The notes under the pieces: generated by a model
Told to the model about the DNA's origin: nothing
The model's input: only the letters and a program-made list of their open reading frames with translations
The model's database searches: none
Assembly: GCA_048013815.1 (NCBI GenBank)
Contig: CM106585.1
Location: 12,338,001-12,402,000, forward strand
DNA from: Setoptus koraiensis
Lineage: Eukaryota > Animalia > Arthropoda
DNA: 64,000 nucleotides
Direction: 5' to 3'
Translations under genes and position numbers: made by a program
Shown here: piece by piece, positions 1 through 23,200 of the stretch
Layout: each line of letters opens with the position of its first letter
Position numbering within the stretch: the first letter of the stretch is position 1

Positions 1-17
1 CCACGCGGACACTGGAC

Positions 18-39
18 TGTGTGTGTGTGTGTGTGTGTG
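18..39. repeat. (TG)n microsatellite, representative of many CA/TG tracts in the noncoding blocks
   Basis: Read directly; similar tracts at about 1369, 3849, 25313, 28729, 30861. Confidence 0.95.
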
Positions 40-1368
40 ACAGTGAGCTCAACAGTCGATGACTGGCCAGTTGTGCTTTCGACTATCCGTACAACTTGTA
101 GCTTTTAAGTGACGTGGCCGCAAATAGAGAGACAATAATAAATCAAGTATTGTATTGCACGATGATGCAATTGCCGGTGACAAACAGCAGCAGCAGCGGC
201 GTGCCGACGACGAGAATCTGTTTCCAATTTGTGCAAGGTTCGCTCTTGGGCATCGTCTTGGCGTTGGCTCGCAAAAGCAGTGGCGGCAGTTTGGGCAGCA
301 GATGTACCTGTTGTTTTGTCCACGATGACGAACAAGTGCGAGGCATGTTGCATTGAAAGATTGCAGAGAAAATAAGATGAAATAAAGTTGTTGTGTGCAT
401 GAGTCCCTCGATCGGCACTCACACACACATACACCGTGTATGATACCCGGCGTATGTATGGTACACCAAGTGGCGTCAAGTGGCAAGTCACAAGTGACAA
501 GTCAGAGTCGGTTGCAGAGTTGATTGATTTTGCGTAGTGGCGTTTAATTTGAAATTGATAACTACCCATGCGAGCACGGTAAAGCACCTTGCGAGTCGCC
601 AGGAGCCCCCGCTGATTGGTCAGCCGTGATTGTTGTTGTTAGCGGCAGAAGCAGCGTCGTTGCGTCATATACAAATGAAGCCACTTATAGGGAGCAGCAC
701 TACCGTTAGTGTTGAATCAACAGTGTTGATGTGTTTCCATTGTGCTCACGGACAAATTGCGAGCCGCTGGTAGCTGGGGGGCGCAGCAGCAACAACGACA
801 GCAGCGACGACAGCGACAACAACAACAACAACGACAGCGACAACAGCGACGACAACAGCAGCAGCCGCCCCACAACAATGGTTTACTGCTGCAAGTAGCG
901 ATGCATTGTGTGTGCGTGTGTGTGTGTGTGTACATGTGTGTGAGAGAACGATCCGACATGCGAGCGAGAGAGAGAGCCAGAGAGAGAAATAAAAAGAGAT
1001 TCACTAGCGAATTATCCGCCGTTGTAGGCTAGCTTGCCAGCGATAGCGACAGAGTGTAGGCCAGAGCTGCGGCTAGGCGTGCTCAGCTGTGCATCATCTG
1101 TGTGTGTGTGTTGTATCATCGCCGTTTGGAATTCATGTGAGTGTGTGTGTGTGTGTGTGCGTTTGTGTGTAACTGAGCCGTAATAATTTGATTCAATTTA
1201 ATCTGGAACTCCTGTAAATAAACGCCCGCCGTCGTATAAATGTCGGTATCAATGTGAGTGTGTGTGTGTGTCGAGCTCTATTGGCCGACCTGATTGCGCA
1301 ACAGAGAAAGAGCCGCATTCTTGCAAGCCGACAGAGCACAAGCGTGCTCTGTCGGCCTAGTGGCAACA

Positions 1369-1399
<31 letters not shown>

Positions 1400-1650
1400 C
1401 AACTCAATAGTCGTCAGCCGCTATTTAGCACCAGCGCTGGCTAGACGACGCTCGCAAGCGCATTGTCAGTCGACTATAGAGAGGTCTGTGGTGGTCGAGA
1501 CAGAGGGTGTAACAATCAAAATGCGAAACTTAGACTAAAATGTTCTAATTGACTTCTTGGATCGCACCATAGTGCGCTTGTACTCTATCGCTCGCTCTCG
1601 CCGTCTCAAAGCGCAATCTGTTACATAAGAGCCGATATTGTGTGCAGTGC

Positions 1651-1682
<32 letters not shown>

Positions 1683-2225
1683 TGTCGACGACGAGCGCTC
1701 TACTATGTCTGTCCGACAACTGGAGAAATGATCCCAAGACTGGCAAGACACACACTGGCGAGCGGCAATAAGGCGTCTTGCCAGTTGCATAGCACACTGA
1801 CTATTGACTGGCAAATTTGCCAGTGAACAGTCTAGTTACATGATACGAGAGAGAGAGAGAGAGACGAAACTATTGCACTAGGCCAACAACAAACTGTCTG
1901 CTAACAGTACATTGCCGATGGTGATGATGTGAGACGGTGGGCAAATTGAAACTAACTTTGCACCTGATATTGCCCCGACCACCGTAATGATGTTCGCCGC
2001 GATCATCGTGACGAGATTAGGCCAACCGAAGGGTCCGCTCTGGCGTGCACAATGCGCCCGACAGCCCGACAGCCAGACGCGGCCGCACACCCGGACAGCG
2101 GGCAAAAAATGTAATATAATTAGCCGAAACAATGAGTGTGTTCGAAATTGCAATAAACGCCGCCGTTCGGTCAGTCGCTCTCGTTAATCTCGCCTGTGGG
2201 CCGCCGATATCTTGTTGGTTGTCCT

Positions 2226-2297
2226 GTCGCTGGCCACACTATCGTCGCTGGCCACACTATTGTCGCTGGCCACAACACCGCCGGCCACGACATCGCT
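2226..2297. repeat. 18-bp minisatellite (GTCGCTGGCCACACTATY), two clean and two degenerate copies
   Basis: Read directly from sequence. Confidence 0.8.
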
Positions 2298-2930
2298 GGC
2301 AATATCGAGAACCTGTGACTTACAGGTGAGCGGTGCTCACAGGTAACAAGTCTGTTGTCATTGAGCATTCAATTCGGACATGCCCGCGTCGCCTGGCCAC
2401 CGCTGTTGGCGCCGCACGATGGAAGCCGCAATAAAACAGCGCAGCAACAGTGACAGCGCTCGCGACAGCAGCACAAACAGTTAACATTTGACGTCAGTCG
2501 GCCAACATGTGTGCCAAAGGTATTATTAATATTTCACAATTTCAACATGTGCCCGCTCGATCATTAACATGAATGACAAGAGTTCTTTTATAGTTCTTTG
2601 CCACTGCATATATGGCGCTGTTACGTGCGCTATGCCATCATGCCCACAACGGCGTGTGTGTCGTCTGATTATTATTAGTATAGTGCTTATGAGCACGCCA
2701 GCGAGGCGCTTCACAGTTTTAAACAATTGCCCATGTATCTCTGGCGATATTTGATATTTTGCGCTTGTACACACACCGCAGCGGCAGCAGCCCCACCTGT
2801 TTAAAATTCGGATCGCTCGCCAGCCCAAGACAATGGCCGTGTGAGAAAGCGAGACCGTGGGGACACACCAAACTTGAACGCAACTCCAGTGTTTTGTAGC
2901 GCAACGCCAAGCCCACACACACGCACACAC

Positions 2931-2990
2931 TATGAGTCTCATAGCATGAGTCTCATAGCATGAGTCTCATAGTATGAGTCTCATAGTATG
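2931..2990. repeat. 14-bp tandem repeat YATGAGTCTCATAG x4, each unit a near-perfect palindrome
   Basis: Units at 2931, 2945, 2959, 2973; ATGAG-T-CTCAT is self-complementary. Confidence 0.95.
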
Positions 2991-3249
2991 GGAGAGTGCG
3001 ACACTGGCACAGCGCGGGCAAGGTGAGCGCAGTCGGGATATTTCTTGTCCAACTTGATCGACAACTTCTTTTCGAATTTCGAACGCACAAAATTCGAATC
3101 GCATTTTTGTTTGTGTGCGTGCGTGTGCCAGCCACGGCAGCCTGTTTGTGTGTGTGTGTGCCACCGAGCGCATCCACATTCATGATACATCCGTGTACTT
3201 GCGAGCTGCCCTGCCACCGCTCTCCAGCAGCGAACCTTGCTTCTGTTGC

Positions 3250-3312
3250 GGCCAACACGGCCACTGTTACGGCCAACACGGCCACTGTTACGGCCGACAC
3301 GGCCACTGTTAC
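3250..3312. repeat. 21-bp tandem repeat GGCCAACACGGCCACTGTTAC x3 plus partial
   Basis: Units at 3250, 3271, 3292 (one substitution in the third). Confidence 0.93.
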
Positions 3313-3847
3313 GGCGGCCAACACTGCCGCGCCCATCTTCACCTATTGGTGGGTGCAATATTGTCGCCAGTGCGAGTCATTTGTACAATATTGACCAACC
3401 GCTGCCGCGTAACGAACGCCAACGTGCTCGTAACGTGTGTGTTTTTTCGGTTGCGGCAAATCAATTTCGCCGATCAATCGGCCCCACACGCTCGCCAACG
3501 CAACGCGCCCGCCGCCAGCACCAGCGAGCCCGATCGATTAACGAGTTTTTTTATAATTGACTGAGTGATGTGACACGGCGGGGGCCGCTTCCATTCGCTT
3601 CCCGTGCGCCGCCCGCCCGTCCAGACTCTTGACTCCAGACTCTGGAGTCCAGAGGCCATTTTAATTGATATATCAAGGGCTTGTGCTCCACACAAGCACA
3701 TGTTCGATTTGGGACCTGCACTTGCCGCGGTACATGTGCCGTGTTTACTGTGCACTTGTTCGTAGCCAGTGTGTGTGTGTGTGTTATGTAATAGGCTTAT
3801 GCCAACAACGTTGGCCAGCGTCGAGCCCGACGCACTGACACTGTGCA

Positions 3848-3880
<33 letters not shown>

Positions 3881-5064
3881 GCACCACCATATGCACAGCT
3901 TCGGTGGTGTGCGAAAAGCAAAACGCACCAACCAGCGACAATGTAACTGTGCTCGCCATCGCGCGCCAATGCACAGCTTTGTGCGCTCGCAATGGCTTTT
4001 CCTCTTTTTTATACACACACTCTTTTTTGTACACACACACACACATTTGTTATGAATGCGCTGTGGAAGGCACACATATACATGCGATTACGTGTGCAAT
4101 TTGACAACTTGATTGGTTTGCCCTGCTGGTGCCACACTGACGCAAGTCACCACCAAACAAGCAAACTCTCTTGCACACTGTGTGTAAGTTACACAGCCAA
4201 TGTGCAGAATGTACAAAAGCCCCGCTCCAAACAATCCAGCCAGTGCTGTTGTTGGCTGCTCCCACTGACTGCCACTATCCATAGCACACACGCACACACA
4301 AGCACACAGATGTACCTTGTCTGTCTGCCTTTCATTGCATGAAATGTTGTTGCGGAAGAAATCCGCGAGGGCGGCGCTGCTGTGCTTGCTTAAAGCTCGC
4401 TCAAACCAAGCCAGTTGGCAATTATACAATTGGATTATGTGCGCTAAAAAACCACTTGTGCTCTCATATGCTCTACATGTTGCGCTGAAGCGCGCAATCA
4501 TAAAAGAAGTAACATTTAAAGAAAACACTGCACACTTTGCAATGCATTCTAGAGCGCTGCAAGCGCACCTAGCGGATTTATTTCGCATTGATATTTCAAA
4601 CATTGTAAAGCGATCACACAGTACAACTGAACACAACACATTCGTTCCGAGGGATAACTCTCAGCAGCAGTAGCAGCAGCAGCAGCTCGACATTAACATT
4701 CACACGAACATACACACACACCAAATGATATAGAGAGTCGAGCAGACAAACAGACAAACAGACAGACAAAGATAGCCTATCTTTTAGATAGGGCAGCGTC
4801 GACATCAAGAAAAGAAAACATTTAGAGGCCAACATTGTGTTGTATTGTATTGTCCCAATACGCTCTAATATACCATGTAATATTACTATTATTATTATAT
4901 TATTATTTTGAAAAAACAAAAAAATATCACCACCATCAATATTATTACTATTATTATTGAATATACACCACCATAATTGCTATTCATCATCAATAGCATC
5001 ATCACCATTATTTACTTATTATATTTCCATGTTCGAATATATGCATATTGTTTAAGTGTATATT

Positions 5065-5162
5065 CGAACTAACGAACGAACTAACGAACGAACGAACGAA
5101 CTAACGAACGAACGAACGAACGAACTAACTAAAGAACTAACGAACGAACGAACGAACGAACT
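5065..5162. repeat. (AACG/AACT)n tetranucleotide microsatellite
   Basis: Read directly from sequence. Confidence 0.95.
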
Positions 5163-5442
5163 AGAGAATCAACCAATCAACAAACCGACTTACGAACAAC
5201 AGAAAGGATACAAATAGATAAATAGATAGATGCACACACTTACACACCTCATATTATTAAAAATCGAGACTCAATTTTCTATCATCATTAAATATATTGC
5301 ATATATATCAAAAATATATGAATATATCGGTATATAGTTAGCAACAAAACACACACACATACACACACACTATGTCGTGTATGTAAGTGTTACAATTCTC
5401 ATTGCACCATCAGATCATCCTGTTATATATATATATATATTG

Positions 5443-5520
5443 TATATTTATGTATACATAAAAACATACATATATATTTATATATATATATATATTTATG
5501 TATACATAAAAACATACATA
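5443..5520. repeat. 30-bp direct repeat x2 within a TA-rich tract, each copy containing the 16-bp palindrome TTTATGTATACATAAA
   Basis: Copies at 5443..5472 and 5491..5520. Confidence 0.9.
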
Positions 5521-5575
5521 AATATATATATATATTGTTATACATAGAGATAAATAGATAGATCTTCATCAATAT

Positions 5576-8500
5576 ATGGCTGTTAGCTCAACTGGACAAG
5601 CACCCTCATGGGCTGCAGCCGCAACCAAGTCAACCTCCTTGGCTCCCACTTTAGTTAGTAATGCATTCGAGTCATGCAATGGATTCTTCAATGGCTCCAA
5701 TAATTCTGCCGCCGTCAGCGCCATAGAATCATGGGCTACCTCAGCTGCTCAAAGCAATAATAAAACAGCACAGTCCATGGTGGGGTCATCATCATCAAAA
5801 TCATGGATTACATCTGACAATAATAGCAGTAATGGTGGCGGATCAATTCAAAATGGTAATAGCCGCATAACAACAGCTAAACAGCAGCAACAACGCAATG
5901 ACAATGGCGCTGGTTGTGTTGGTGGAAATTTTGATGATGGTACAGCTATTTGGGGCAGTCCAAGTGCTAAAAAGTCTGGCGTTGATTGGGATAGCTCAGG
6001 ACAACCGATAATGAAAGCTTCTCCCTTGATACACAATAATCATGATTTAGTCAGTCAAAATTTAGCCGATAATAATTTCAAAGAGGCCGATAATCGTTCA
6101 AGTCATGGTTTAAAGCAAATACTTTCATTTAATAATAGTAGTAATGATGATGCTGAAATTAGTCAGGAACAACAACAAAAACAACAAAATTCAACAATTA
6201 ATAATTTAAAGGGCATGCAATCTAATCAATTAGTCACAAACTCTTCAATAGACAATGGCACAGGTGCTTGGGGTTCGCTTTCAATGATGGAAAAAATTCC
6301 CTCTCCAACAAACAACATAGACAAAAGTCGTCTAGACTCTGATTCATCTCTACTAGTTAACAATACAAACTCTGGCTGGGGCGACGATCAACTATTATCA
6401 TCATCCAGACCAACAGTGCCAATCTCGCAACAAAATTCATTGTGGGACACATCATCCAAAAAAGTTGCTCATGCTGTTCAAAACAACTCTTCATTCTATT
6501 TCAATCATAATACTAATAATGCTTTTGGTGACAGCATAACTGACCAAAACTCTCTTACTATGCTGAACAATATTGGTAAATCAAATACCAAGAATAATAA
6601 TATAATCTATGCGAACAAAAATCTTGCTAAATTAGCAGATATTGGATTTAAAGATGTTGATATTCGAGCTGCATTGATTAACGCTGGAATTTTTCATCAA
6701 CCTCTTACCCAATCTACATTGCAGTTGTTGAACGAATTGTTTAACCAAGATAGTCTCCTAAGAGAGATGCAAAGTCAAGCCTCTCAGCATTTAAACAAGC
6801 CTGGAAATGACACATCACCCACTATCGCTATCATAAGCAAAATTCGTAAAAATATGCAAACAATTGTCAATCAGCTTATCACTCAGCATGTCATGTATAC
6901 AAAACAAGCTAACCCACAGAGTAACAAGCCTTTCATAAGTGGACTAAATCTTGGTATTCAAGGCTCATCAAGTCTTGGTGGGAATAGTAGCCAAATCCTG
7001 CCAGGCATGTCTTCATCTTGTGATAATTCTAGTACTAAAATAGTGCCCGATTCTCAAACAAATGCTACAGCCAAAGCTTTAGATGGTTTTAACAGTGGAC
7101 TTTCTGAACTCTCATCTTTATCCAAGAATAGTCTCAACATGAATTGTGCTAGTTCAACTTCTTCAAACTTGAGTAACGGATCTCGAATGAACTGCATTGT
7201 TCCTAACCAGGTGCCTAGTGGTTCATGGGTCGCTGCTGCAACAAAATCACCTCCTTCAAGTAACGGAAACTTCGAGTACGGTGGCAATATGGGGTCATGG
7301 TCTTCAGTGAAAAGTCAAAGCACAAATAAATCCAATGCTAAATGGGACTCAAATGATACAGTTAGACGAAACGAAAACGGCTTTGACGATGGCACAGCCA
7401 TATGGGGTAATCCTAGCGCTAACAAGTCTGGAATAGATTGGGCTGAGGCAAATTCAGCCGACAGCGCAAATAATGGCCGCCGAGCAGCCTCAAAAGATAC
7501 TAACACAGCGAATTTTTCGATACAGAATGCATCAACTTCCCATGGTTCTTCAAGTTGGGGTCAACCTTTCAGCACCAAGCCCTTGAATTTCGGTGCTGGT
7601 TGGGACGAAGAAAGTGCCTCAACCACTACTAATAACAGGGTGGCAAGTCCCCCAGATCCTATCTGGCCATCTTCTGATAAATCTCACATCAAGAACACAG
7701 ATTGGCCCATTAGTGATACTCATAAGGGTCTAGGTTCTGGTTGTCTTGATGACTCTAGTCTCCACTCACGGAAATCTTTATCTAAAAATTTAATCCAAGG
7801 TACTAAACAATTTCATATCTTAACTGAAATGGGCTTCGAAGAAGAAGAAGTCGAAACCGCTTTACGCTCAAGGAACATGAATCTAGAGAATGCTATAGGT
7901 TAGTGTTGATTTGTTTAATCTAACACTCAATTCCCTAGCCCCAGATTATCACCATCACTCAATATCTAATCGACTATTTATCTCCTATCCACAGAGGATC
8001 TAAGAAATGGAACCGACTGTGCAAATAATGGAAATGACAATGATTCTATCGTATCTACCAAGGTTAGTCATAAAGGATCTGTTCTATTTAATGCTAGTAT
8101 TAGTATTGATTTATGAAAGTCATCGATTACTGACAACTTTTTTGCTCATGTTTTTTTCGCCAGGCACCCGCCATAGGTAACTCATATCAGTCATCTAGTC
8201 GTATTGTGTCTCCATCTGCTAGTCCTGACAAGAATGCAAGTAATCAACAACTATCAAGTCGATCACCATATATGTCGCAAAATCAGTCAAATGTAAGTTC
8301 TATTTTATTCTACCACTTTATTCTCAAAACATTGACATATCTGAGTTGATTATCAGAAGTCTTATTATCTTTGAATCAGTTCGACACAAATGGCCAAGCT
8401 TCAAATAATACACTTGGAGGTCAAGCTTCGCAAAGAACTTCTGGTATGTCATCCAACGTTCCATCCACCGCACAATTGAAGCACATGGTTCAACAGATCC

Positions 8501-10441
8501 AGCTTGCTGTGCAGGCCGGACATCTCAATGCTCAGGTATGTTTCGATGATTGGTTGTAAATCGCCACATTAAAGCCTGATGATATATTTGAATTAACTTT
8601 TTCATGTCTGATTTGCTCCCATGGTTAGATATTAAATCAGCCACTCGCTCCAGTCACATTGCAGCTCTTATATCAATTGCTTCAGCAAATAAGAGCTCTT
8701 CATCAATTGCAGATTCATACCAACCAACAGTTTGGAAAAACCGGGTGTCATCCTCCTGCATCTATAAACGTTCAAATTACCAAAACCAAGCAAACCATAT
8801 TGAATCTGCAAAACCAGATAGCTGCTCAACAGGCTCTATTTTTGAAACAGAACCAACAAGCACAGCAACCAAATCAACCCAGCGGTATTGCTAGCATCGG
8901 TTTCTCAAACTCTCTCAAAGATAATGGAGAGCCCTTAGTATCTGTCAACGATACCTTCAGGGCTGATGCACAAGTGCCAACATCAAACTCACTTGATAGC
9001 TTTGGTATGAATGGAGATTTGAATCAGAACGACTCTTGGCGTTCCAGCCGAGTGCCATTCAATTTAGGCAAAAGTTCCATTAGCTCGGATAAGAACATGA
9101 CCTCATTAATGGGTGGCGATCTCACTGGTGAATTTGCTAGAGCACCTGGACCATCCGCACTAGCCTCATCAAAGGGAGAATTTACTCTGGCCCGGCCCTC
9201 TGCTTGGTCTAGTTTTGGCATGGATCCAGAATCAGTTTGGCCAAACACTTCTGGGATTTCATCCTCGAGGACATCTCAACGTAAGAAGAAATTCAATTTT
9301 TTCTTTATCATGACTGTTACACCTCGAATCTATTAATAACCTGATCTATTATTTCTTTCCTTAAACAGAACCTAATGTCACTTTCGATCTGGTGCCAGAA
9401 TTCGAGCCGGGTAAACCATGGCGAGGTAACATGTTGATGAAAAATGTTGAAAGCGACCCCACCATGACACCTAGCAGCCTTGCAAGGTCTATGACGCAGC
9501 AACAGCAAAAAGATGAGGCAGATGATTCTTCTAATCTATTTAGCTGCTGGCCAATCAGTTCTTCTTCAACCAAGACAAGCCCAACGGCTGCTGTGACAAC
9601 ATCTAAATCTCCTAACAATATCTCCGAACAATTTGGCGGCCTGTCACTACAGTCAAATCCATGGAAGTATTCATCTACCTCTCCTCCGTCTGTGAGTGGC
9701 AACCAATCCTCAACCAGTGTTGTTAGCAACTCTGACAATGATGTCAGTGGAAGCTGTGGTGATATGATTACAAGACAAAATAATTCAAGTGATGTCAACG
9801 CGTCAAATATCAAGCGCAATAGCCTATCCTCAATAACCTTGTCAACTTCAGCCTCAAATGACTCCTCACTAGCGAAACTCGTTCAAGGGAATAGCAATCG
9901 CCAACAATCTGCTTATAGCTGGGTCAATTTAGCTTCGCCTTCAATGAATAACATTGAACAAAAAAGAGGTATAGATCCACGACTAGGGAAGATCTCCGGT
10001 CGACCAGCGCCTCCACCTGGCCTACCTTCGGCAATCGGCTCTGTATTTGATCGCTCTGATGATCTTGATAATAGCTCAAACGAAGATAATGGCTCAAGTG
10101 TTTGGGCTACAAACGCCTCAGCCATAAACGGTTGGGAAAGTATACCAAAGCAGCAAGTTGGATCCCAATGGTTGTTATTACGTAATTTAACTCTTCAGTC
10201 TGATGGGAGTACTATCAAATCTTTATGCTCTCAAAATGGTCCAATGCAGTTATTCCACTTATATCTCAATCAAGGATTTGCTTTAGTTCGCTATTCAACT
10301 CGGGAAGAGGCTGACAAAGCGAGATCGTCATTGAACAATTGTATCATCAATGGCACGACCATAATCGCTGATACTCCGTCTGACCAGGAAGTTCAACACT
10401 ATTTGCAGTTGGGAACTAGTGGCCAACAAAACAACTGGTAA
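5576..10441 (+). CDS. TNRC6: GW182/TNRC6 (gawky) miRNA-silencing scaffold; join(5576..7898,7995..8062,8164..8292,8380..8535,8629..9280,9369..10441), 1466 aa
   Basis: GW/WG repeats with Ago-hook motifs (DDGTAIWG twice, DNGTGAWG), UBA (LTEMGFEEEEVETALRSRNMNLENAIEDL), M domain (ILNQPLAPVTLQLLYQLLQQI), PAM2 (VPEFEPGKPWRG), P-GL motif (PPPGL), C-terminal RRM (WLLLRNLTLQSDGSTIKSLCSQNGP...GFALVRY). All five introns are GT-AG and exon phases sum to a multiple of 3. Confidence 0.95.
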
Positions 10442-12544
10442 CATAACTTGTGATATTTCAGATATATCACCTACCAAGATATTCTTATCACCATAGCTAC
10501 AATTTTACAAATATCTCTTGAATATCAGACTCGACATGAATATAAATATATATATATATATATGATATTTGTCATGTCGTACTTTTCATCGACTACTTGA
10601 AAACATCCAACCACAATCACGATTACCTGTCCTTTCGACTTGAACTCCATAGCAGCTCGATGTGAGAGAAGCGCTCTACCTGAAGGATTTAACAGTTCTA
10701 AGTGATATCATTATTCTATATCGTCGACCGTCAAAATTGTTGATAAATGATACATTATGATTAGACGACTGCCATATCACGATGTGACGCATTATTATAT
10801 ATGGAAACAAAACAAAAAAAAAAGAAGAGGAAAAAATCTGTTATGTTTTTAACATCTCAAAACTGTGTAATAGCTTCCAGGCTGAGTACCGCCCATGCCT
10901 AGATGTTATTGAATTACCTGAACTTAAAACCAAGCCAAGGAATTAGTTTCTAGTAAGGGGAAATTTAACGAATATTGAGAAAACTAAGAGACAATCGAAC
11001 CACTATTTAGAGGTCTCAATGTGGACAAGATGTAATCATTAACTCGAAGCCTCTAAAATATATCGAGTTCGGGCGCATAAATTCATTTCTTATCAAGCTG
11101 AATATACTGATTTGCAGATCGATTCTTCCAATGTCAATGTTTTTCTATCTCCTTCCTTAAGCCACACTGATTCAATATGCTCGGCATTTCTCACTGAACA
11201 TGGCCCCCAAACAATCAATAAGCTACAGTGGGCTGAATCTCGTGGCGGAGAAAAAGTATCTTATGTTAGTTTTTTTTTTTGATCATCTAGATGAAAGACT
11301 TCTCTATCAACGACCATTATTCCAAGCAAAATAGACATACCAACAACATGCTAAGCAAAACTTCATCCTCATCTCTGTATGTGATCGCTAGCATACTGGT
11401 CCCAAAGTCATCTTATACTGTTGCACAAGTAAAAATCAAATACAGGATAATGCGAACACACAAACAACGAAAAAGGCAATGTCTTAGTATAATTTTGTTT
11501 TCTTGTTGACAGAACTAAAGCTCTTTGTATACAGTGGTGGGTAGGGGGGGGGGATGAATTTTCGGGTGTGTATCGAGAAGAGTGCATTGCTAGCAATGTC
11601 TTTACGGTCGGTTGTGTTTTGGCTCTTTGATACATTTTGGTGTTATTTTAGTTTTCTACTCGCTCCAAGAATCATGCCCACCACTTACTCATTACGAATA
11701 ATCCACAGGGCGATTGGTGCAATTTGTGTCCTCTTGGACCAACTGACAATCCTCTGGTTGTGAGCTAGAGAGGGAGAAACAGAGGGAGAGTTGAGCATGA
11801 ATTCAATAGTGTTACTGGAGCAGGCAAGCCGATGCAAAGCTCGTGACACACTCGCGTGAGCTCGTTCAAACGTAAATCGAAAACACTTCCTGAACGATGT
11901 TGTTGTTGTTGTTGTTGTTGTTGCTGCTGCTGTCTCAGACAACTTGTCTGGAGCGTTAAGGAAATTTCGAACGAGAATGAAGGCCATGAAGTGGAAAGAA
12001 GCGGCTTTTCTCATAGAGATGTTGTTGTGAGATGCGCAAATGCACAAAACATGTGTTATCTGTTTGCGCGAGCACCTGTAATGCTTCTCGACCATTGGCG
12101 ACTAATGGTTTGTTTGTTTGTTTGTACGTGTGCGTGCAAAGCGTTCAATTCTGTCCAAGACGTTGACTGGGCCGCCAATGGTGCCAAAGAGACAGATTGG
12201 CTTTGTTGTTGGCAGTTTCAGTATATCGTCATTGTTAGTTAGCTGGAATTTGGACTTCCACGGAATTTATTGTTAGATAGCGTTGGATGGAAATGCAAAC
12301 TTTGTGTGTATATCGGTAGCGCCACTGCACAAACAAACAAATATGTTGGATCTGTCATGACACTTGTCGGTTTATCGCGCATTCTTGAGGACAGATAAGA
12401 TAGCTAGCAAGATAAAAACATTGGCCGCTCGGATGTGGATTGCAGACAGAAGCAGGGATCAGTGAATTAGCAGCATTGTTGCATTATTATCGGTATTATC
12501 GGTATTATTGGTATAGCATTGTCAGGTATTGGTTTATTGTCAGG

Positions 12545-15033
12545 ATGCGTTACAAAAATTGCGACAAAAATTACATTTATGCACTGGCCTGTCTCATATT
12601 GCACGGACACGCATTTGTTTGCCGCGTATCAGGCTTTGTATTATCGGACATGCCGTTGACTGTGTCGGCACAAAGCCACGTTTGCCGCGACACAAACCGA
12701 ACACCCCAAATAGAATTCAATTCATTCGACATAGAACGACAAATTGTGGACCATGTGGAGGCGGACATCATCACCGTTTATTGGCACGATTTTGAGACGC
12801 GTTACATCAGCGAATACAAGGATATTTATCACAGCTATTATATGGTGCTGGACGAAATGAAAAATGGCATATTAACTGCACGGGAACACTTCGAGGAAAC
12901 CATTTGTTCCGAGACCAATGCGCCCTGTGCACGATACACGCTGACGCGAAAGGATTTAGATGCCGACTGCTATATCAGGATTGCCGAGTCTAACAATTGC
13001 AACATAGAACCCAAAAGCTCCGCCTGGGCACGTATTAAGATTCCGCCCCGCAAAACACTATTGCCTTCGCCGCATCTGTTGACGGCCGTGCTGCAATACG
13101 AGTCAACATACAATGTAACCTGGATAGACGTTGACAGAGATCGCGCCGCAAATGGCTACTATACGCTGTTTTGGTGCTCGGACCAGTCCTACTTACTAGA
13201 GGTTTGTATGTCTATCGAGGGCTCCATGAACATAACTGGCACTGGCATTAGCTCGCTGATACACAAATTTAAGCCCGGATCTCGCTCCTTACGTGTACTC
13301 AAGTTTGGCATTGCCTACAACGAGGGCCCGCGAACTTCGGGCATTTTATGGGCACATTGTACTATATGGGCTGGCGCTGATAGGGATTTCAAGCACACTG
13401 TCACCATAATGAACGCAACTGCAATCAAGGTGGCGTGGGAGTTCGAATGCTCCAGTCGACAGATCATGGTGACCCAATACCATTTTGTGTTTTTGTCTGA
13501 GCGACTGCCCATAGTTAGTGCATGCGAACATTCAGGCAACTCTTCCAGTGCAACTAAACAAATTGCGAAAACATTCAACTCGGCCTGGCCAGATGCTCTG
13601 CACCGAAGCGCAGTGTTTGAGACGAGCCCGTTTTCGAGATACAATTTGACAATGAGCATTGACTTCAACGGATACCAATACAACAAGTCAATTGTAATAT
13701 ACACGCCTCAATACGCGCCCTATGACTCGCCAACAAGTCTCGTCGCCTTAAACAACACTCACGACTCGGTTCAGCTGCAGTGGAGCCCACCAAAATTGGA
13801 GAATGGCCCCGATTATAATTACAGAATTGTGTATGCATCACATACGGATGGCGCCGAGGAGCAATGGACCAACGTTGTGTCCGATCCAACTGTTTGCACT
13901 CAGCATAACAATCTGACAAATCTGAAACCCTACACCAATTACACGATATTTGTCGAGGCATGTATGAACTCCACCATCAATGAGCTTGTGTGCTCGCCAA
14001 AATCAAACAATATTTCCCTTCGTACACCATCATTCAAGCCACCAAAGGTAAGTGAACAAAAACGCGTCAGATCTCTTGTGCCGGCTCGGTTGGCCTCAGT
14101 TAATCTAGAGATAAATTAAGCCATCTATAGAAAAATTATTAACCGTTTACCATACATGTGTCTTCCATACTTGTTGTTGCTTGTTAGATGGATAGACCCT
14201 ATATGTTGGAGATGAAGTCTTACTTTAGATATAAACGCAAAATTAAAATAGCCTGGAATTCGCTGATTGAATTCAACGGCGAAAAACACAGCTACAAGCT
14301 ATACTATAAAACTAATGATTCTTCGACATACCAACAGATAAAAACCGTTCATCACACATTGAATCACACCGAATTCGATGTAGATTGCCGAGAAACAAAA
14401 CAAGATACTCTTAGCTACAAGATTGCTGCATTCAATGGAGATTACACCGGCGATTTGAGCGAACCTGCTTTTGTTACATTGTGCGACGATAGTATAATCT
14501 ACGAGGTTGTTGTATATTGTTTGCAAACTGGAACTTTCATTGTGTTTATGTTGATATTGTCCATGTTATTGCACGCAAAACACAATGAATTAAAACGGAG
14601 ATACCGGGGCATCAGACCAATACTACCTGCCGCGCTTATCTTGCCCCGATTGGCTTACAAAGAGACCTCATTCTATGCCATTGAGAATGACCAGGAGATG
14701 AATGGCGAGTCAGGCGAAAAGCATGGTTATATTGTTATAGCGCAAACTACCGGCGAAGAAAAAGATAATAAGGAACCTCTTAGAGATGAGACCGAAAAGT
14801 GTTCGGCTAAACACAGTGATAAAACAAATGAAACACCCGCTAAAATCGACAACTGGACTCACCAAGAGCCTAGCTACATTCCATTGCATCTGATCAATAA
14901 TCGAACGATGGTAGAATCAAGCAGCAACGGAATCTCGAGTCACTCCACAAACGAAGAAGACGAGTTATGTTATGACACCAGATCTATAGAATCAATCAGT
15001 TTATTTGTTGACAATTTGATAAACAAACAATAA
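12545..15033 (+). CDS. dome: Domeless/gp130-like type I membrane receptor with FN3 repeats; join(12545..14047,14188..15033), 782 aa
   Basis: Hydrophobic leader after ATG 12545; Dome-like FN3 signatures (SFDI...ITVYW, YTLFWC, SGILWAHC, APYDSPTSL...VQLQWSPPKLENG); one TM helix (VVVYCLQTGTFIVFMLILSMLL) followed by a Box1-like IRPILP. Intron AAG|GTAAGT...TTAG|ATG is phase 0. Confidence 0.75.
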
Positions 15034-15323
15034 TTAAAAGCTACTGTATACAGGCCGCAGCAACAGACTCAATAGCGTCCCTGTAATACAGAACCTGTTG
15101 GTTCATTGAAACTTCCGAGTCGCTTCTATTGATACTATTTTACTTTTACTTTCTTATAAATGAAAATGTTACTCAATGAAACGTGTTTTACCTCTGCACT
15201 TGATTTCTAATCAAGCAGAAATCAGGTTGAAGTTGCTATTCCTCTCTCACTCATTTTCCATTCTTTACCAGACCATCGAGGAGTGATGGTCGCACCAGGT
15301 GCAGATCATCCATATAAGTGAGA

Positions 15324-16586
15324 TTATGTGGATTTTCGCTGAGGTAATCTCATGGGCCAATCTCGCAAAACTTGCTGCGCCCTATCAGATAAATGAATGA
15401 CGTATCGAGATTGTGTTGCGGTTGCATAAGTCGTATAGATATTGCGACACATAAAAGTCACCAAGTACATCGTTTTTATTTTTGGACCATATATTTTATC
15501 TGGGTTTTCGAACAAAATCCACTCCATATTACCGAAGAAATCCTGATGCTGGAGCGACTTGAGCCAAATGTCCGAAGATTCGTTGATAAAGTCATTACAT
15601 AGTTCACCTTTGAGCTTCTCATAACGAGATACAGCTTCGTCATCTGAACTGGGCGATGTTCCTTGGAGCCTTTTGTTGGAAAATGCTACCAGACTGTGCA
15701 ATAGTAGTTCTTGGGCATTGAAGTCACTTTCTTTCAGCTCGTTGGCGTACTCTTGTAATTCGTCCAAATCGATCGGAGCTGTTGGGGACATACCGAACGT
15801 TGCTTGCAATACATCCATCGATTTTCTCATCAGTGGGCTGTTTTTTTCAAACAAATTTATGCCTTCGGAAAGATTTTCTAGCACTTCCTTGAAACACTTT
15901 TGTCCTGTGGGCCTAACAACGTCCGACAAGAGTTTCACATAGCTATCCTCATCCGGACTACCGAATGATTCTCTGCTTCTAGCGTAGAAGGTCGAAACTT
16001 TCAACGATTGAGAACAGGTCATCTTTCCATCCTGTGACACATTTACAAAGGCATAAAGGAAAAACCTACGAAGAGACATAGCATCCTCGGGCCCTAGTGA
16101 CTCCAGTTTGGTGCCCCCGTAGATTCTTCTCAAGTTTTCATCTTTTATGAGAGCTTCAATTTTCTGACTTTCATCGCTGCCTGTTTTGTATTTCGATTTT
16201 AGTCCATGATCATCGTATAGGTACCCAAGACAGCTGTCCATAATAACCAAATCTAGCACTGTTGTCAATCTATAGTTATCAGAGACGAACTTGTTCAGAA
16301 AAACGATGCAATTATCGCTTGTTGGCTCATTGTGACGCACATCACCGTTCTCATACTTCAATCTGCCTCCTTTCTCTAATATCGGCTTCTTCAAATATAG
16401 TTCGTAGTATCGCTTGTACAAGTCTTCGCCAGCGCCAATAGGAAGTCTCTTTAAATGACCGATTGCCTGCTCCACGGGCTGCTGTCTCTTCACGAGGAAC
16501 TTGCCTAAACCCGCTGCGTCACAATAAACCAGAAACGTTAAGGCCACAAGCAATGAAGCTCTGGCCAAATGCATGTTTAGAATCAT
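15324..16586 (-). CDS. Secreted orphan protein, 420 aa, single exon
   Basis: Uninterrupted long ORF; ATG at 16586 (or 16574) followed by signal-peptide-like MILNMHLARASLLVALTFLVYCDA; six further Cys; no family recognised. Confidence 0.8.
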   Translation of the reverse strand: MILNMHLARASLLVALTFLVYCDAAGLGKFLVKRQQPVEQAIGHLKRLPIGAGEDLYKRYYELYLKKPILEKGGRLKYENGDVRHNEPTSDNCIVFLNKFVSDNYRLTTVLDLVIMDSCLGYLYDDHGLKSKYKTGSDESQKIEALIKDENLRRIYGGTKLESLGPEDAMSLRRFFLYAFVNVSQDGKMTCSQSLKVSTFYARSRESFGSPDEDSYVKLLSDVVRPTGQKCFKEVLENLSEGINLFEKNSPLMRKSMDVLQATFGMSPTAPIDLDELQEYANELKESDFNAQELLLHSLVAFSNKRLQGTSPSSDDEAVSRYEKLKGELCNDFINESSDIWLKSLQHQDFFGNMEWILFENPDKIYGPKIKTMYLVTFMCRNIYTTYATATQSRYVIHLSDRAQQVLRDWPMRLPQRKST

Positions 16587-17254
16587 GTCCACTATAGTCA
16601 CTTTAAAGATCAAAATATTTTAAATTTACTGCCGTCGATTTGACACGAAATTACACATCAGATGAGGAAACCAGTCGGTTGTGTCAATGAATCTAGAGTA
16701 TGTGCTCTCGTTTCAATTTTGTCGCTTCGCAGTCTCATTGAGCTTTCAATTCCAAGCGTCGTTTCTATTTTTAATCTACGCCAATGCTGTTTTGAGATAA
16801 CTATCATCTTTGTGCCTTCATATTCTCTCTCCAGGAATTAACTCTCGGTGCTTCGAACAAATAATTTCGTTCCTAAGCCCAAAATAGATCGCCCACTAGC
16901 TTGCACCACTATCACCACTAGCATTGTGATGCATTGATAATGAAAATTCAATTGCCCTTCTGGTCGACAACGAAAAACAAACAACGATCAAACCAGCAGC
17001 TAGACAACGCCTCGTGACAATGCAACGAACATGCAACAGTATTTATTGATTTTTGATTTATTTATCGCAGAATGATGCCGTTGTTTGCCTACACATATAC
17101 ATAGATTTGTTTATCTTTTAATGTTGGTATATTCAGGGTATATTCGGTGATCACAGAACTATTTACACAAAGACTATTGTTGACCAAACGATCTGATCTA
17201 TATACATATTCATGATGACAGGATCTATTTACATCAACATTGCTGTCGATCTCA

Positions 17255-20200
17255 TCATCGGTGACTTCTGTCACCGACCGTAATGGGAGTGCTGTTGCTT
17301 TTGTTGTTGTATTTAATCATTTGTTGCTTGTTTGTTGTGTCATTGCCCTGATTCGTTATTGACTGGCACGATGATGAATAATTTGTTGATTTATATGGAA
17401 TAGGTTGATAATGATGCATTGTTGGCACTTGTCCATACTGTTGTGGCTGTTGTTGTAGCTGCTGTTGCTGACTGACCACGTTAATTGTGGACGAACAATA
17501 TGTGTACTTGGCACCGGATTTGAGATTTGTGCCACGGTTTAAGTTGATGCGTTCGTTAAGTAGATTCTCGAACCAGTTTTGGCGACTCAGTAGATCTTAT
17601 GTTTGGCGGCAGCATTTGCGATATGTGAACATTATCCGGACAATTTTGGAATAAAGAGAAGTAGAGGGTATATTAGCACAATTGAGTCAATGTTGTATGA
17701 AAAGTAGTCCACAACATGGACTTGGGAAGAATTGATGGCTCACCTATTAGTTGCGATTGATAGCGCGCTTGGAACTCTTTGATTTTGTTGCGTTCAAAAC
17801 GAATGAACGACATTAGTTGTTCGTGGCGCGATTTAAATTGGTCCACCGACACGTTGTTGTTGTCCAATTGTTGCTGGTTTTGTTGCGACGACGAACATAT
17901 AATCATCGATTGGGGCCTGCTAATTTGATGGTCGCCACGACGATAATAGTCGCTACTGATAGCGTCAGAATCCAATTTACTTGATTGCACCTGAATGTGA
18001 CTAACCATCTGAGAGGAGGTGGAAGACGACAAGTTAGGATTAACGCTGCTGGACGATCTGGCCGGTTCGTGATTAATCATTATGCAACTAGATGTTCGCG
18101 CAATCGGTATTGCTTGCTGTTGCGAATTCAGCTGCTGCTGATATTGTTGAGTTCCGTTCAGCCTGACTAAAGTGGTTGAAAGGGGTCTCTTGTTTTTGTT
18201 TGTGTTGCTGCCGTTTGTCATTGTCTGGCTGGCCAAATCGGCCGTGGTGGGAGTAGGAACTATGAGAACTTGCGAGACAGTATGCTGCTTGCCGAGGTCC
18301 CCCATCAAATGTTGCTGCTGTAACCTGTGGCGCTGCCTTGGTGGCGGTCTAATGGGACATTCTTGACTATTCAGGTACTTGTTCATTTGTAGTTTTTGCG
18401 CCACATCGCAATGGCTGTATTTGTTGTTGGCATCTTGTTGCAATTGTTGAATGAATTGTTGCTGTTGCACGGATTTGTTGATGCTGTTGCTGGTGATAGT
18501 GCTGCCGCTGCAAATGCTGCTCGACGACGACGATGAATGTTGGTGCTGCAACGACATGTGACAATTTAGTTTGATGCGAACGAAATAGTCTTGCTTCTCT
18601 TCTAGGTCGTTCATTCTTTCTAGAATGTTCACCAACAATTTCTGGTATTCGCAAACCATCTCAAATGTCTTGTTGTGATGAGTTTTGATTTTCATCAATA
18701 ACGATTCGAGGAATTCCAAACAAGTGCTGGCTATAACAATTTTGTTGCTGTTTGCGTCAGCGCAATAATTTTGCTTTGGTAGATAATGTTGATAGCTGCT
18801 ATTGCAAGTGCTTGATTGCTGCAAATGTGTTTGATTGGGCATGCCCGGTTGCAAATGAGACGACGGGGCGGGATACGGCGCGGATGTTACGCAACCACGA
18901 GCCGAATAATGGTGCTGCTGGCCAGCTGGACATTGGAAGGCGGCTTGTTGTGCAACTTGTGTGTCGTAGTTAATTAGCGATGCACCGCTAATTAGTTGGC
19001 CACTGTTGTTGTTAGCGTAATGGTGCTTGGGGTTATTTGGGCCGCCACCACCAACTACCACAATTGAGGGCGACGCTAGTTGCCTCGACTGGTGGTGATA
19101 AGTCGACTGCTGTTGTTGCTGCTGCTGATTGAATTGCTGCTGCTGTTGCTCTATGATCATATTGACACGGTTTAGATTATCTTTGCTCAAATTGAGCTCA
19201 TTGACTAGATTATCGTTTAGGCTTTGCGTTTGTAACAATCTCAATTTGAGATTGTTGATTTCCATTTGTTGTTGCTTGACGAGTTGCAGCGTTGATTCTG
19301 GCTGTGGTTTAACAACTATGGTTGACATCATCGGATTATCATTGGCGCCATTGCTTGCCCTTGAATCACCTGTCTGCTGCTGCTGGTTGTTGTTGCTGTT
19401 GTTGGTGCTGTTGGTGCTGCTGCTGTTGCTGATGCTGTTGTTGGTGGTGGTGCTGGCGCCGCCGTTGTGGCAGGCGAGATCCGTGAATAATGGAAATTGC
19501 TGATGCTGGCCAGCACTGTCGGCCAGCAGATATGCGGGCACTCTGGCCCGTTCCAGATATTCCACTCCCTGCATAGCGCGTCTCTCCATACTCTGGCTGC
19601 GATTGGACGCCCGATCGTCTCGCTTGACCATTAGTCTGCACACCGGTTGCTCAACAGTTGATGAAGTTGCCTCGCTCGGGCAATTATTTGTCAATTTAAC
19701 ACCGCTGTCGACAGCTGCCTGCTGCTGCTGCTGACCATTGATCCTGATGCTGGTCACACCGATCGCTTGTTGTTGCAATTTAGCACCGTCGTTATCACAC
19801 TCCTTGACTCGCTGCACGGCCAGCTGCTGCTGCTGCTGCCTGTGGGCTGCAAATCGTCTTGGCGGAAGTTGGGGTCTGTCCCTTGGCACTGGCTCTGTGT
19901 CCGTGGTTTGCAGTGGCGAGCTTGCGCAGGTGAGACTGTTGGCAGCATGCGTTAATTGATCGTCTTGGCTGGCCACTGCTGCAACTGTTGCAGTTGTCGT
20001 TGTTGTTGTTGTCGGTGTTGCGGTGCTCGAATTGGCCGGTAGCGTCAGACTGACTTCGTTTTGAGTTTGTTGTTCGTTTGGTGCCATTTCAAATTTCGCT
20101 TTCGTCGCCACAAGCGCGTCGCCGCCAGCCTCGCTGACTGGATCTATTTGTGGCTCATTTTCACCTGTCGGCCCCAGTTTGGTGGCGGCAGCGGCGCTTG

Positions 20201-23200
20201 CGTCGTTGGCTGACGCTGCCAGAGAGTTGCCCGAATCGGATGCGGGCGCCAATCCGCTCGACGCTTGGCTGCTCGGGCTGGAGCAAGTGGTCGATTCCCG
20301 CGAGTTGAACGAGTCGGCGTCCGAGTAGCCGGACGAGCAAGCTGTGGACGAGCAAGCTGCCGTCGAGGCCGACGAAGCGCTTTCTCTTTTGGAGTGGTCG
20401 CCCAGCGGCATCTTTGCAGCATCGGCTTCGCTCTTTTCCGCTGGCTCCTGTTTCGATTTCTTGTTGTCTGTGTCATTGTCGTTGTCGTCGTCGTCGCTGT
20501 TGTCGCTGTCACTGGCACCACTGTTGTCGCTGTCGCTGCTTATGCACAACGACTTCATGGGCAGACTCTCGTGAAACAGATCGTTGTCGTCCGAGTGATA
20601 ATCCGACGACGAGGTCTGATGTGCACCCACGAGAGCCGGATTATTGGCTGAGCGATCGTCGCTGGGCGCCTGCGATCCAGCGGACCCTCCTTGCGCCGCC
20701 GGCTTCACGAAAATGGGGCCCGCCTTGCCTGCTGCAATCTGATCAGCGGCGCCCGAGCCGCTGCAATCGATGGCGCTGTCGTCGTCGCTGGATGTTGTGC
20801 TCCGACTGCCGGTGCATCTGTTGTCTGCCGAGCCACTTGTTGGCTGTTGTGTTGCGCCGGTGTTGCCGGCAACGTCTGCCGGATTGCCTGGCGAGCTGTC
20901 CTGGCGATCGCCATCGGGGCCGGTGTCGTCGACTGTTTTGCGCTCCTCAATAGGCGCCGCAACGATTGCTGCAACGCTGGGCCTGCTGTTGGTGCCCTTG
21001 CTCATCTGAAACTGCAATCGGTTATTCTGGAAGCGGAGCCGGCTCTCCAGTTGTTTTTGTTTGCTCAGCGCCGTCTGGACGAGCTTCAATTCTGACTCCA
21101 AATTGCGCACCTCTTTGCTCAGTTTCTGGCTCAGCAGTCTGGCGTCGTTTTCGGCCTCCTCGATCTCGTTCAATTGCTCATTCAGTTGCGCCTTCTCCTT
21201 GGCCAGACTCTGGTACCGCCGCTCCCAAACGGGACACACAGCACAGGCCGGCGCGGCGGGGGCCAGCGATGCTGGCTCCTCTTTGCGAGCCACAATTTGC
21301 TCGCTGGTGCCTCGCGTCAGCTTGGCGTAGCTGTCACAAGCGTCGTTGACCGATTGCGCAACGGATATGGTTGCCATCGACACTGATTCTGTCAGTTGCG
21401 AATGACTGGCCGGTTTGGGGCAGCTGACCGCATTTGCCACATCGCCGCCACCGATATCCGCACCGATTCCGGCCGGATTGTTGAGCATAGACAGACAGGA
21501 AATGGACGAAGATTTGACGGGCGACAGCAGGCTCTTGCGCGGGCCCACATTGCTGATGGCGGGCAACTGCTGCTGCCTGGGCTGCTGCGCCAGTTGCTGG
21601 CCCAGCGTCTTGGCCGGACAACGCTTAGAGGCCGCCACAAATTTGGGTATGGCCGATGTGGACCTGACCGACAAATTGTTGCACGAATTGAGAGAATTGA
21701 GGGCCGTGTGAGAGCCGCCAATTGTTTTGTCGGAGGCAAGCGACAGCCGGTGAGCGGCGGGCGACGTTCGCAGGCCCTGAAACGAGCACTGGCGCGTTAT
21801 TGGTCGGATTTGGGAGCACCCAATTGCGCCCGATTTACTTTGAGATGGTGCGCTTGGTGCCACGAGCGAGCTGTTGTGCCGACCGATGCCGACCGGCGCT
21901 TTCGGAGGCACCAGTGCAGCGCCAGCTTGTTCGGCCAGGCGGTTGGCGGGCGTTCTTTCCAGGTTCGACTTGGATCTGCTCATCAGGCTCAGGCTGTTGT
22001 TGTTGCGAGCGGAGCGCTGCTGCTGGAGAACGCCCCGCGTCAGGATGGATTTTGTTGGCGTGGCAACGGGGCCAGCTCTGTTCTGACTTGCCGGATGGTC
22101 TTGGCCTGTCTTTATTGGCACGACTACGCGCGCTAGCGACATTCTCGCTGCCTTGCCAGCCGGCGATCTCGCCTCTGGCTGCTTCGTTTGGGCGCGCTTG
22201 CATTGTCCATTGATGGCGTTGCCGTCTGCATCCATTGTATCAGCCTGTTTTTGGTTGTCTTCCGGTGGCTCGTCGGCTCGCTTGGCGTCCTTGTAATCGG
22301 TTGCGCCGGACGAGGCCGATGTAAACGACGAGCAGTATTGCGACGACGACGACGAGCGCGGCGACACAGAACGCGAAGACGATGACGGCGACAGCGCAGA
22401 GGGCGCCCCCGTGCTCGACACGCAGCCCTCGCCGGCCAGCTCGCCGTACTGCTCGTTTCCGGTGCCGCCGGAGTGCCTTTGCAGCGAGCAAGTCAGTGGC
22501 TTTAGTTTGCTGATCGCGCCCACATCATTGCGCTCCAATGAGCAGTCGCTACTGCCGCCGCTGCTAATTGATTGAACGCTGCTGTTGCTGCCGGCCTGGC
22601 CTGTTTGCATATTATCTAACATGTCGGCCTGACCTGATTCACTATCGTGTTCTCGATCTCGCCGGTATGCTGTCGCAATTGCTGCCGCTGCTGCACCGTT
22701 ATCAGTTTGTTTGTTTGATTGGCTTGTGTTGGCGGCCGCGCTGGCGATGCCAGTCGCTCGGGCCAGAATTGAATTTGCCTTGTCCAATTGAATCAGTTCA
22801 GTTTTGTTTGTTGTCATGTGGAGCTCGTTTTCATTGTTGTCACTTTGCGACTGTTGCATAATATTAGTGTGCTTGCCGTTATTGTTGCTGATACCTGGAG
22901 TGTTTGTGTTCGCTTGGAAAAATTGTTGCAGTTGTTGTTGCTGCTGTTGATCGTGTGTATGAACTTGAACATGTTCGACACGGTCACTTGTTCTCATGCT
23001 GTTGTTGCTCACATCGGCAAAGTCCATGGTTGCTGGCTTGCCGCCGCCGTCTAGTCGCTTTGCATCGTCGTGAATGATTGTCGAGTGATCATCGCCACAA
23101 GTTGCCGCACAAAACAGTTGGCTCACTTTCCTCGAGCTAACAACGTCGGCTCGAGCAATGGCATAATGCTGCTGATCAGAGGCATTGGTCAGTCGCAATT

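Follow-up and report, generated by a model that had tools for sequence, protein, structure and literature searches.

A GW182 gene of Setoptus koraiensis with a diverged, partly deleted repeat of its front half

GW182 proteins couple Argonaute-microRNA complexes to deadenylation, and the number of Argonautes per GW182 molecule is thought to shape the cooperativity of neighbouring target sites and silencing condensates. We analysed a 64,000-nucleotide stretch of DNA from the arthropod Setoptus koraiensis (assembly GCA_048013815.1, contig CM106585.1, positions 12,338,001 to 12,402,000 of the forward strand; hereafter the window) and found a single six-exon GW182/TNRC6 (Gawky-type) gene at window positions 5576-10441 (+). 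The front half of its product, which is the Argonaute-binding and Q-rich half of GW182 proteins, is present twice ahead of one silencing domain, and this arrangement has been kept by selection in at least two species. The upstream copy is referred to here as copy A and the downstream, canonical one as copy B. In the reading that we prefer, an in-frame tandem duplication would have copied the 5' half of the gene; the duplicated unit would have begun with the start codon, taken in the N-terminal tryptophan motifs and the UBA, and ended within the Q-rich M domain. Copy A would then have evolved fast and lost roughly 120 residues, comprising UBA helix 3, the counterparts of exons 2-4 and the first M-domain half; it has no introns and would later have come under purifying selection as an N-terminal extension of the canonical protein. 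We hold the structural and evolutionary part of this explanation to be highly probable, and the explanation as a whole, which takes in duplication, retention and Argonaute docking, to be probable.

Contigs of four public runs were placed on positions 4800-10700 to obtain splice joints and coverage. Run X5 is of unknown kind, and its contigs are spliced and therefore RNA-derived; run X9 is labelled 'RNA?'. Together, the contigs of these two runs gave five GT..AG joints and hence six exons, two of which were absent from the prediction and were found through the RNA joints. We describe the locus as one GW182 gene because the five joints yield an uninterrupted coding sequence of 4401 nt, with its sole stop at the end, that encodes 1466 amino acids (aa). 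Exon 1 contains no internal splice joint in the RNA contigs, and its donor could alternatively be placed 2 nt to the right. The initial annotation had put the whole duplicated module in one open reading frame (ORF; 5576-7903 (+), 775 aa); this holds for copy A and the beginning of copy B, but the M domain of copy B is encoded by exons 4-5, past three introns. The gene set of the window is eukaryotic and compact, with introns of about 90 nt.

UBA, M_domain and RRM_1 each exceed their Pfam cutoffs in the gene, the UBA at aa 748-774 (E 1.6e-9, 37.8 bits, cutoff 22.4) and RRM_1 in exon 6 (E 8.1e-7, 29.3 bits, cutoff 20.7). Downstream of exon 1, M_domain was matched in the pieces 8371-8556 and 8659-9333 and RRM_1 in the piece 9392-10438. 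The PAM2-like motif of exon 6 (aa 1115-1145) is close to the LV.EFEPGKPW stretch of the arthropod GW182/Gawky proteins P0009 and P0003 and of P0011; Pfam TNRC6-PABC_bdg had no match in exon 6 (E<=1) and matched P0011 only at E 0.0015.

Exon 1 contains, in order, copy A (aa 1 to about 450), a linker (aa 451-537) and the canonical start of copy B (Table 1). Met1 and Met538 each stand 10-12 residues ahead of a SW.AAATKS motif, and since a methionine thus precedes this motif equally in both copies, the start codon lay within the duplicated unit. In copy A the FDDGTAIWG block begins at 5930 and the UBA-like segment at 6623, in copy B at 7382 and 7811, respectively; these positions, like the ORF start and that of Met538 at 7187, had all been given correctly beforehand. 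Copy A has 8 tryptophans (aa 12-290) and copy B has 9 (aa 551-710), with none at aa 291-550 and 11 in the C-terminal effector part. The N-terminal tryptophans of both copies are mostly flanked by G, S, D or N.

Table 1. Features of the GW182 gene, in window positions; aa numbers refer to the 1466-aa product.
Feature	Position	Strand	Content and evidence
Exon 1	5576..7896	+	ATG at 5576; copy A, linker and N-terminal part of copy B; joint 7896>7993 in X9 and X5
Copy A N-terminal module, aa 11-139	5606..5992	+	W12, W53, W77, W126, W138; SWAAAATKS and FDDGTAIWG blocks; BLASTP to B550-622, E 6e-10
Copy A central W motifs, aa 225-295	6248..6460	+	W232, W268, W290; same order as W661, W676, W697 of copy B
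Copy A UBA remnant, aa 334-367	6575..6676	+	Pre-UBA motif and UBA helices 1-2; without helix 3
Copy A M-domain second half, aa 367-445	6674..6910	+	Pfam M_domain E 4.7e-7, profile 120-210; hhalign E 2.6e-5
Ser/Asn-rich linker between the copies, aa 451-537	6926..7186	+	dS 0.05; weak match to post-M region of L002
Copy B N-terminal module from Met538, aa 538-623	7187..7444	+	W551, W575, W590, W610, W622; dN/dS 0.055
Copy B central W motifs, aa 655-712	7538..7711	+	W661, W676, W697, W710
Copy B UBA domain, aa 736-781	7781..8014	+	Across exon 1/2 junction (intron 7897-7992)
Exon 2	7993..8060	+	GT..AG joints in X9 and X5; also present in L001
Exon 3	8162..8292	+	GT..AG joints in X9 and X5; kept in L001
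Exon 4, M-domain first half of copy B	8380..8533	+	Pfam M_domain profile 85-131, E 2.4e-7; joints in X5
Exon 5, M-domain second half of copy B (to about 8877), then W-containing middle region	8627..9280	+	Pfam M_domain profile 141-240, E 6.3e-14; joints in X5
Exon 6: PAM2-like motif (9383-9475), W motifs, RRM (10163-10411), stop	9369..10441	+	X5 contig spliced 9280>9369, extends to 10700

The two copies share three colinear blocks. When aa 1-537 were compared by BLASTP with the spliced copy B (aa 538-1110), three colinear high-scoring segment pairs were obtained: A11-138 with B550-622 (E 6e-10), A312-367 with B714-763 (E 0.16) and A363-443 with B884-965 (E 3.7e-6). A global alignment of the copies scored 314, as against 107 +/- 13 for 300 shuffles of copy B (z = 15), and identity was 34% in the first segment pair and likewise in the global alignment. 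With the M_domain found in both copies, these results bear out the earlier proposal of two colinear copies. In a multiple alignment with 10 other GW182 modules, all five tryptophans of the N-terminal module are common to both copies and to the GW182s of other species, long insertions separating them in copy A. The N-terminal module matches L002, a contig with a GW182-like gene described below, at E 8e-15, and that of copy B matches all other GW182 hits.

Further along, Pfam M_domain (PF12938) matches both copies above its cutoff of 25.6, copy A at aa 361-451 with 30.3 bits (E 4.7e-7), and the M-domain half of copy A is also matched by hhalign to a profile of canonical arthropod GW182s (E 2.6e-5). 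The UBA remnant of copy A is 44% identical to residues 606-637 of P0009 over 34 aa (BLASTP, E 1.3e-4) and matches P0003 at E 0.002, the match to copy B being non-significant (E 0.16); neither Pfam UBA nor hhalign returned a match for it. By its sequence, this segment is homologous to a UBA yet, as helix 3 is missing, is no UBA domain. A protein language model placed copy A nearest to Atlas clusters of arthropod UBA/M_domain proteins and Gawky, and a sequence search of the PDB gave nothing relevant (top E 0.27, an unrelated plant protein).

About 120 residues of copy B have no counterpart in copy A: those of UBA helix 3, of exons 2-3 and of most of exon 4. Its UBA remnant runs directly into LINAGIFHQPL, which aligns with HLNAQ/ILNQPL of copy B, the slash marking the exon 4/5 intron. 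This intron is present in L002 as well, and copy A has no intron there. The M domain of copy A covers the second half only (positions 120-210 of the 243 of the profile). The linker, which shows no match to copy B, aligns weakly and in colinear order with the sequence after the M domain in L002 (E 0.12), and it may contain another relic of what was duplicated.

To see how widely the double layout occurs, exon 1 was searched exhaustively with HMMER against 1.84 billion representative proteins (E<=1e-3). Of the 11 matches, P0001 alone covers copy A, nine match the copy B part and P0011 matches via its M domain. P0001 (779 aa, 89% identity, full coverage), which is also the sole copy A match among 5.8e9 clusters, is encoded on an 11-kb Logan contig of a second species, L001, onto which all six exons of the window gene map, giving an intact 1480-aa product of the same layout. 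None of the matches other than P0001 has more than one DDGT..WG block or more than one M motif. In six-frame scans, contigs L002-L006 likewise yielded a single DDGT block and a single M motif apiece, and the window and L001 two of each. In L003 and L004 there is no space for a second copy, since the upstream neighbour gene is only 0.7-1.3 kb away. Across 448 surveyed GW182 genes, the architecture was generally conserved and the only duplications were of whole genes (PMC4615383). Given this survey and the single modules of the other matches, the double layout is not routine, which agrees with the initial annotation; in current data it is known from the present species and one relative.

L002:769-3960, a Logan contig from run SRR33593474, which also holds L001, carries a second GW182-like gene. 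Its first exon (604 aa) has a long, unrelated, W-containing N-terminus with a single SW...DDGT module at the end; its M-domain exons are near-identical to copy B, with the intron at HLNAQ/ILNQPL, and a PAM2 exon comes after them; no UBA was found in the gene. The G+C content at third codon positions (GC3) of L002 and L001 is equal (0.32), which is no proof of a shared genome, and L002 is either a paralogue from the same genome or a gene of a second organism in the run. Fast-evolving GW182 genes at L003:8001-10505 (P0005), L004:5216-6706 (P0010) and L008:71-2011 (P0006) have the five-tryptophan module and the M domain, with UBA undetected. The samples of P0005, P0006, P0010 and P0011 all differ. 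In L003-L006, unlike in the window, the GW182 gene has an NXF-type gene (NTF2/TAP_C) as its neighbour. On the downstream side, a gene for an fn3-domain protein follows GW182 both in the window (12440-14119 (+)) and in L001 (7894-10572), indicating synteny on that side.

The duplication is old, because synonymous sites between the copies are saturated: over the three blocks compared, the proportion of synonymous differences (pS) was 0.68-0.79. In the SW block, pS was 0.68 and the non-synonymous proportion (pN) 0.05. In the DDGT block there were 9 synonymous and 4 non-synonymous differences (pS 0.70, pN 0.08), and the initial annotation had been right to call many of the differences there synonymous. 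As the copies are diverged and saturated at synonymous sites while their motif residues are kept, an assembly duplication is excluded.

Selection on the present sequence was assessed by comparing the window with L001 (Nei-Gojobori). The whole gene has a synonymous divergence (dS) of 0.275 and a ratio of non-synonymous to synonymous divergence (dN/dS) of 0.17 (Fisher p 1.0e-61). Copy A (aa 1-450) gave a dS of 0.237 and a dN/dS of 0.19 (p 1.8e-15), and the copy B part of exon 1 a dS of 0.347 and a dN/dS of 0.16 (p 4.5e-13). Within copy A, constraint is tightest at aa 141-340 (dN/dS 0.07). Every indel that separates the gene in the window from that in L001 preserves the reading frame. DNA identity per 100 nt is 87-99% across exon 1 and 87-97% within copy A, on par with the other exons, whereas that of introns is 71-74%. 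From the dN/dS, the in-frame indels and the exon-level identity, we conclude that copy A is coding sequence under purifying selection.

Copy A is also represented among the RNA contigs, in X5 at 5969-6161, 6381-6607 and 6583-6944 and in X8 at 6663-6919, at depths comparable to those of the remaining gene. These contigs are most simply read as parts of one transcript that runs from 5576 through copy B, and we infer that translation begins at Met1. Contigs of X1, a run with a different organism label that covers exon 6 and not exon 1, match exon 6 at 95-99% (9494 and 9517-9604) with a 3-nt in-frame insertion after 9494, and a further, slightly diverged lineage or strain thus expresses the gene.

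Several results on the domains, transcription and descent of copy A weigh against a retained tandem duplicate that docks Argonaute. The central W motifs of the two copies are colinear, but their similarity is non-significant on its own. Pfam Ago_hook (PF10427) had no match (E<=1, E<=10) in either copy or in P0009, P0003, P0005, P0006 and P0002. Because this model appears to be vertebrate-centred (24-96% of members in Atlas clusters), its absence counts against the label 'Ago hook' and not against membership of the GW182 family. We dropped that label, which had zero Pfam matches in the copies or their relatives, for 'conserved five-tryptophan N-terminal module'. Judged by its sequence, the UBA of copy A cannot fold as a canonical three-helix UBA. 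An AlphaFold2 (AF2) prediction of aa 301-460 from a two-row alignment gave no confident fold (mean predicted local distance difference test score, pLDDT, 54); its low-confidence helices are short ones at aa 343-357 and 361-369, then, within the M-domain half, a pair of long helices. Two full sets of Ago_hook, UBA and M_domain, with two Pfam matches expected for each, had been proposed for the gene. This expectation stood for M_domain, which is in both copies, and failed for the others, UBA being matched in copy B only and Ago_hook nowhere; the UBA and M domain of copy A are halves fused by the deletion of about 120 aa.

With respect to transcription, the RNA contigs leave 5194-5968 and 6945-7076 bare, none of them reaches 5576 or joins copy A to copy B, and the protein of copy A is a predicted one, known here from DNA and RNA contigs. 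Depth rises from 3.3 in the contig that ends at 6944 to 7.3 in the X5 contig that begins at 7077, and an internal start could supply much of the mRNA. A promoter located at about 6950-7080, within the linker or close to it, might then drive a canonical short GW182 from Met538 as the ancestral start, the long Met1 form being minor or conditional. Met538 is placed like Met1 relative to SW.AAATKS, in keeping with such a start, and the dS of the linker is 0.05 as opposed to 0.24 in the remaining gene (binomial p 6e-5), with 7001-7100 being 99% identical to L001. This low dS could mark a constraint at the DNA level, such as an internal promoter, or be due to chance. However, dS is low in exons 2-4 (0.12) and the RRM (0.11) as well, and hence its reduction is not specific to the linker. 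Similar-sized gaps and swings in depth also occur elsewhere in this thinly covered gene (e.g., 6162-6380), the placed contigs show neither loose ends nor an accumulation of molecule ends, and the dN/dS of copy A indicates that the long reading frame itself is translated and selected. The RNA structure of the linker was unremarkable (fold z = -0.46), and an Rfam scan of the whole window was empty. An internal promoter of this kind, which we consider unlikely, is compatible with a real duplication and would alter the gene's mode of working.

As to descent, in a tree from the concatenated N and M modules the stem leading to copy A has a length of 1.65 changes per site, and copy A joins the fast-evolving P0005 group and not copy B, a join flagged as possible long-branch attraction; an approximately unbiased (AU) test did not reject a clade of copies A and B (p 0.077). 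On this tree and test, a duplication in the direct ancestor of copy B and a fusion with an older paralogue are not distinguished. In the latter case, a whole-gene duplication would have left two tandem paralogues, of which the upstream one lost its 3' half and stop and was read through into its neighbour. Besides the tree, the own Met and N-terminal motif at the start of copy A would fit such a fusion, as would the near-equal distance of copy A from copy B, L002, P0006 and P0003 by summed BLAST bit scores, and the pre-UBA motif of copy A, which is nearer to canonical arthropod GW182s than to copy B. The presence of L002 in SRR33593474, with GC3 equal to that of L001, suggests that paralogues may exist in the lineage. 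No PAM2 or RRM remnant was found between the copies, however, and neither the AU test nor the flagged join speaks for a separate paralogue. We regard the fusion as improbable, and its end state and predicted function would be identical to those of the tandem duplication.

The missing intron raises a third course, in which the gene's 5' end received a reverse-transcribed copy of its own processed and possibly exon-skipped mRNA. It would account for the intronless HLNAQ/ILNQPL site of copy A, where copy B and L002 have an intron, and for the fact that the missing part is mostly what copy B encodes in exons 2-4. The ends of the deletion lie off the exon boundaries, however: UBA helix 3, which belongs to exon 1, is missing, and the last five or so residues of exon 4 are kept. 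A poly(A) trace or target-site duplication is neither expected at such an age nor seen. DNA duplication followed by intron loss accounts for the same facts, and we think retroposition very unlikely. That copy A is non-functional, whether as an assembly duplication, a decaying pseudo-exon or a chance-open 5' leader, is barely conceivable in spite of its truncated UBA and M domains and a protein predicted from DNA and RNA, for 537 codons stay open in both species in DNA whose G+C is about 38%, every indel between them being in frame; copy A also evolves at a dN/dS of 0.19, shares only about a third of its residues with copy B over the aligned stretches, is saturated at synonymous sites relative to copy B, and recurs in independent assemblies and RNA contigs. 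The artefact and pseudo-exon readings were rejected on the divergence, the purifying selection, the L001 assembly and the RNA contigs, and the earlier view of an in-frame partial duplication that is no assembly artefact held up on these same grounds.

The tryptophans of the disordered GW182 N-terminus insert into Argonaute PIWI pockets (PMC11612316), and each GW182 has several independent AGO-binding regions (PMC5314787); an AGO-binding peptide of TNRC6B, for example, has 85 aa with five tryptophans (PMC6614814). In the tandem duplicate, the 8 conserved tryptophans of copy A, which are set in small-residue disordered contexts, would join the 9 of copy B as docking points for PIWI pockets, and the protein may have about twice the usual number of Argonaute-docking tryptophans. 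We consider the chances that copy A does and does not dock Argonaute to be about even. The helical M-domain half of copy A would provide a second Q-rich self-association surface. In Drosophila, the N-GW, UBA and Q-rich regions together are enough to target a fragment to P-bodies and to recruit AGO1 to them (PMC2685099). As the silencing domain (PAM2-like motif, W motifs and RRM) is single, more Argonautes could be bound per CCR4-NOT/PABP-recruiting end, and copy A would presumably affect valency or condensates in this way. The gene offers a natural test of the valency idea, in which Argonaute binding, stoichiometry and condensate formation of its two halves would be set side by side.

The gene might also produce two forms, the canonical one from Met538 via a linker promoter and a long one in which copy A either has been retuned to another Argonaute or PIWI-clade partner or raises AGO valency and condensates. 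We consider this very unlikely, and, if true, one silencing domain would be coupled to two small-RNA pathways. Dust mites, which are relatives of the lineage, have been reported to have rewired RNA interference (PMC5805368).

The gene is no new kind of system, and no changed function has been demonstrated for it. From Met538 it has the same order as arthropod GW182/Gawky (Drosophila GW182, P0009 and P0003): W motifs with DDGT..WG, UBA, M domain (PF12938), PAM2-like motif, W motifs and RRM. Those proteins have one N-GW/UBA/Q-rich set (PMC4615383), whereas the window gene adds ahead of it a diverged, partly deleted set of about 450 aa and the 87-aa linker. Vertebrate TNRC6A, TNRC6B and TNRC6C are likewise scaffolds with a multivalent tryptophan AGO-binding domain, a C-terminal silencing domain and several AGO-binding regions (PMC5314787). 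Their multiplicity, however, arose by whole-gene duplication (PMC4615383) and scattered motifs, and that of the window gene by an internal repeat of the front half; the Pfam Ago_hook model detects nothing in the window gene. Mosquito and fish GW182s have also undergone lineage-specific local duplications, but these gave separate paralogues (PMC4615383), while in the window gene the duplicate is fused in frame with one silencing domain. The UBA-less GW182s (P0005, P0006, P0010 and the L002/P0011 type), with a five-tryptophan module and an M domain that are 30-75% identical to copy B, have one module per contig and no detected UBA; the window gene keeps the UBA and RRM and adds copy A. As a case of evolution after duplication in a disordered, motif-based domain, it shows that the tryptophans and two short blocks persist while nearly all else changes.

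Elsewhere in the window, a single ORF of 2084 aa at 17673-23927 (-) has no Pfam match at E<=0.001, and no family was assigned to the ORFs at 14188-16613 and 45237-46346, which are 369-559 aa long. Just upstream of the GW182 gene the composition changes sharply, G+C being 0.49-0.55 over 1-4500 and 0.32-0.39 over 4500-7000, and positions 5050-5560 are filled by a short tandem repeat (TNERTNE in one frame) and a TA-rich microsatellite.

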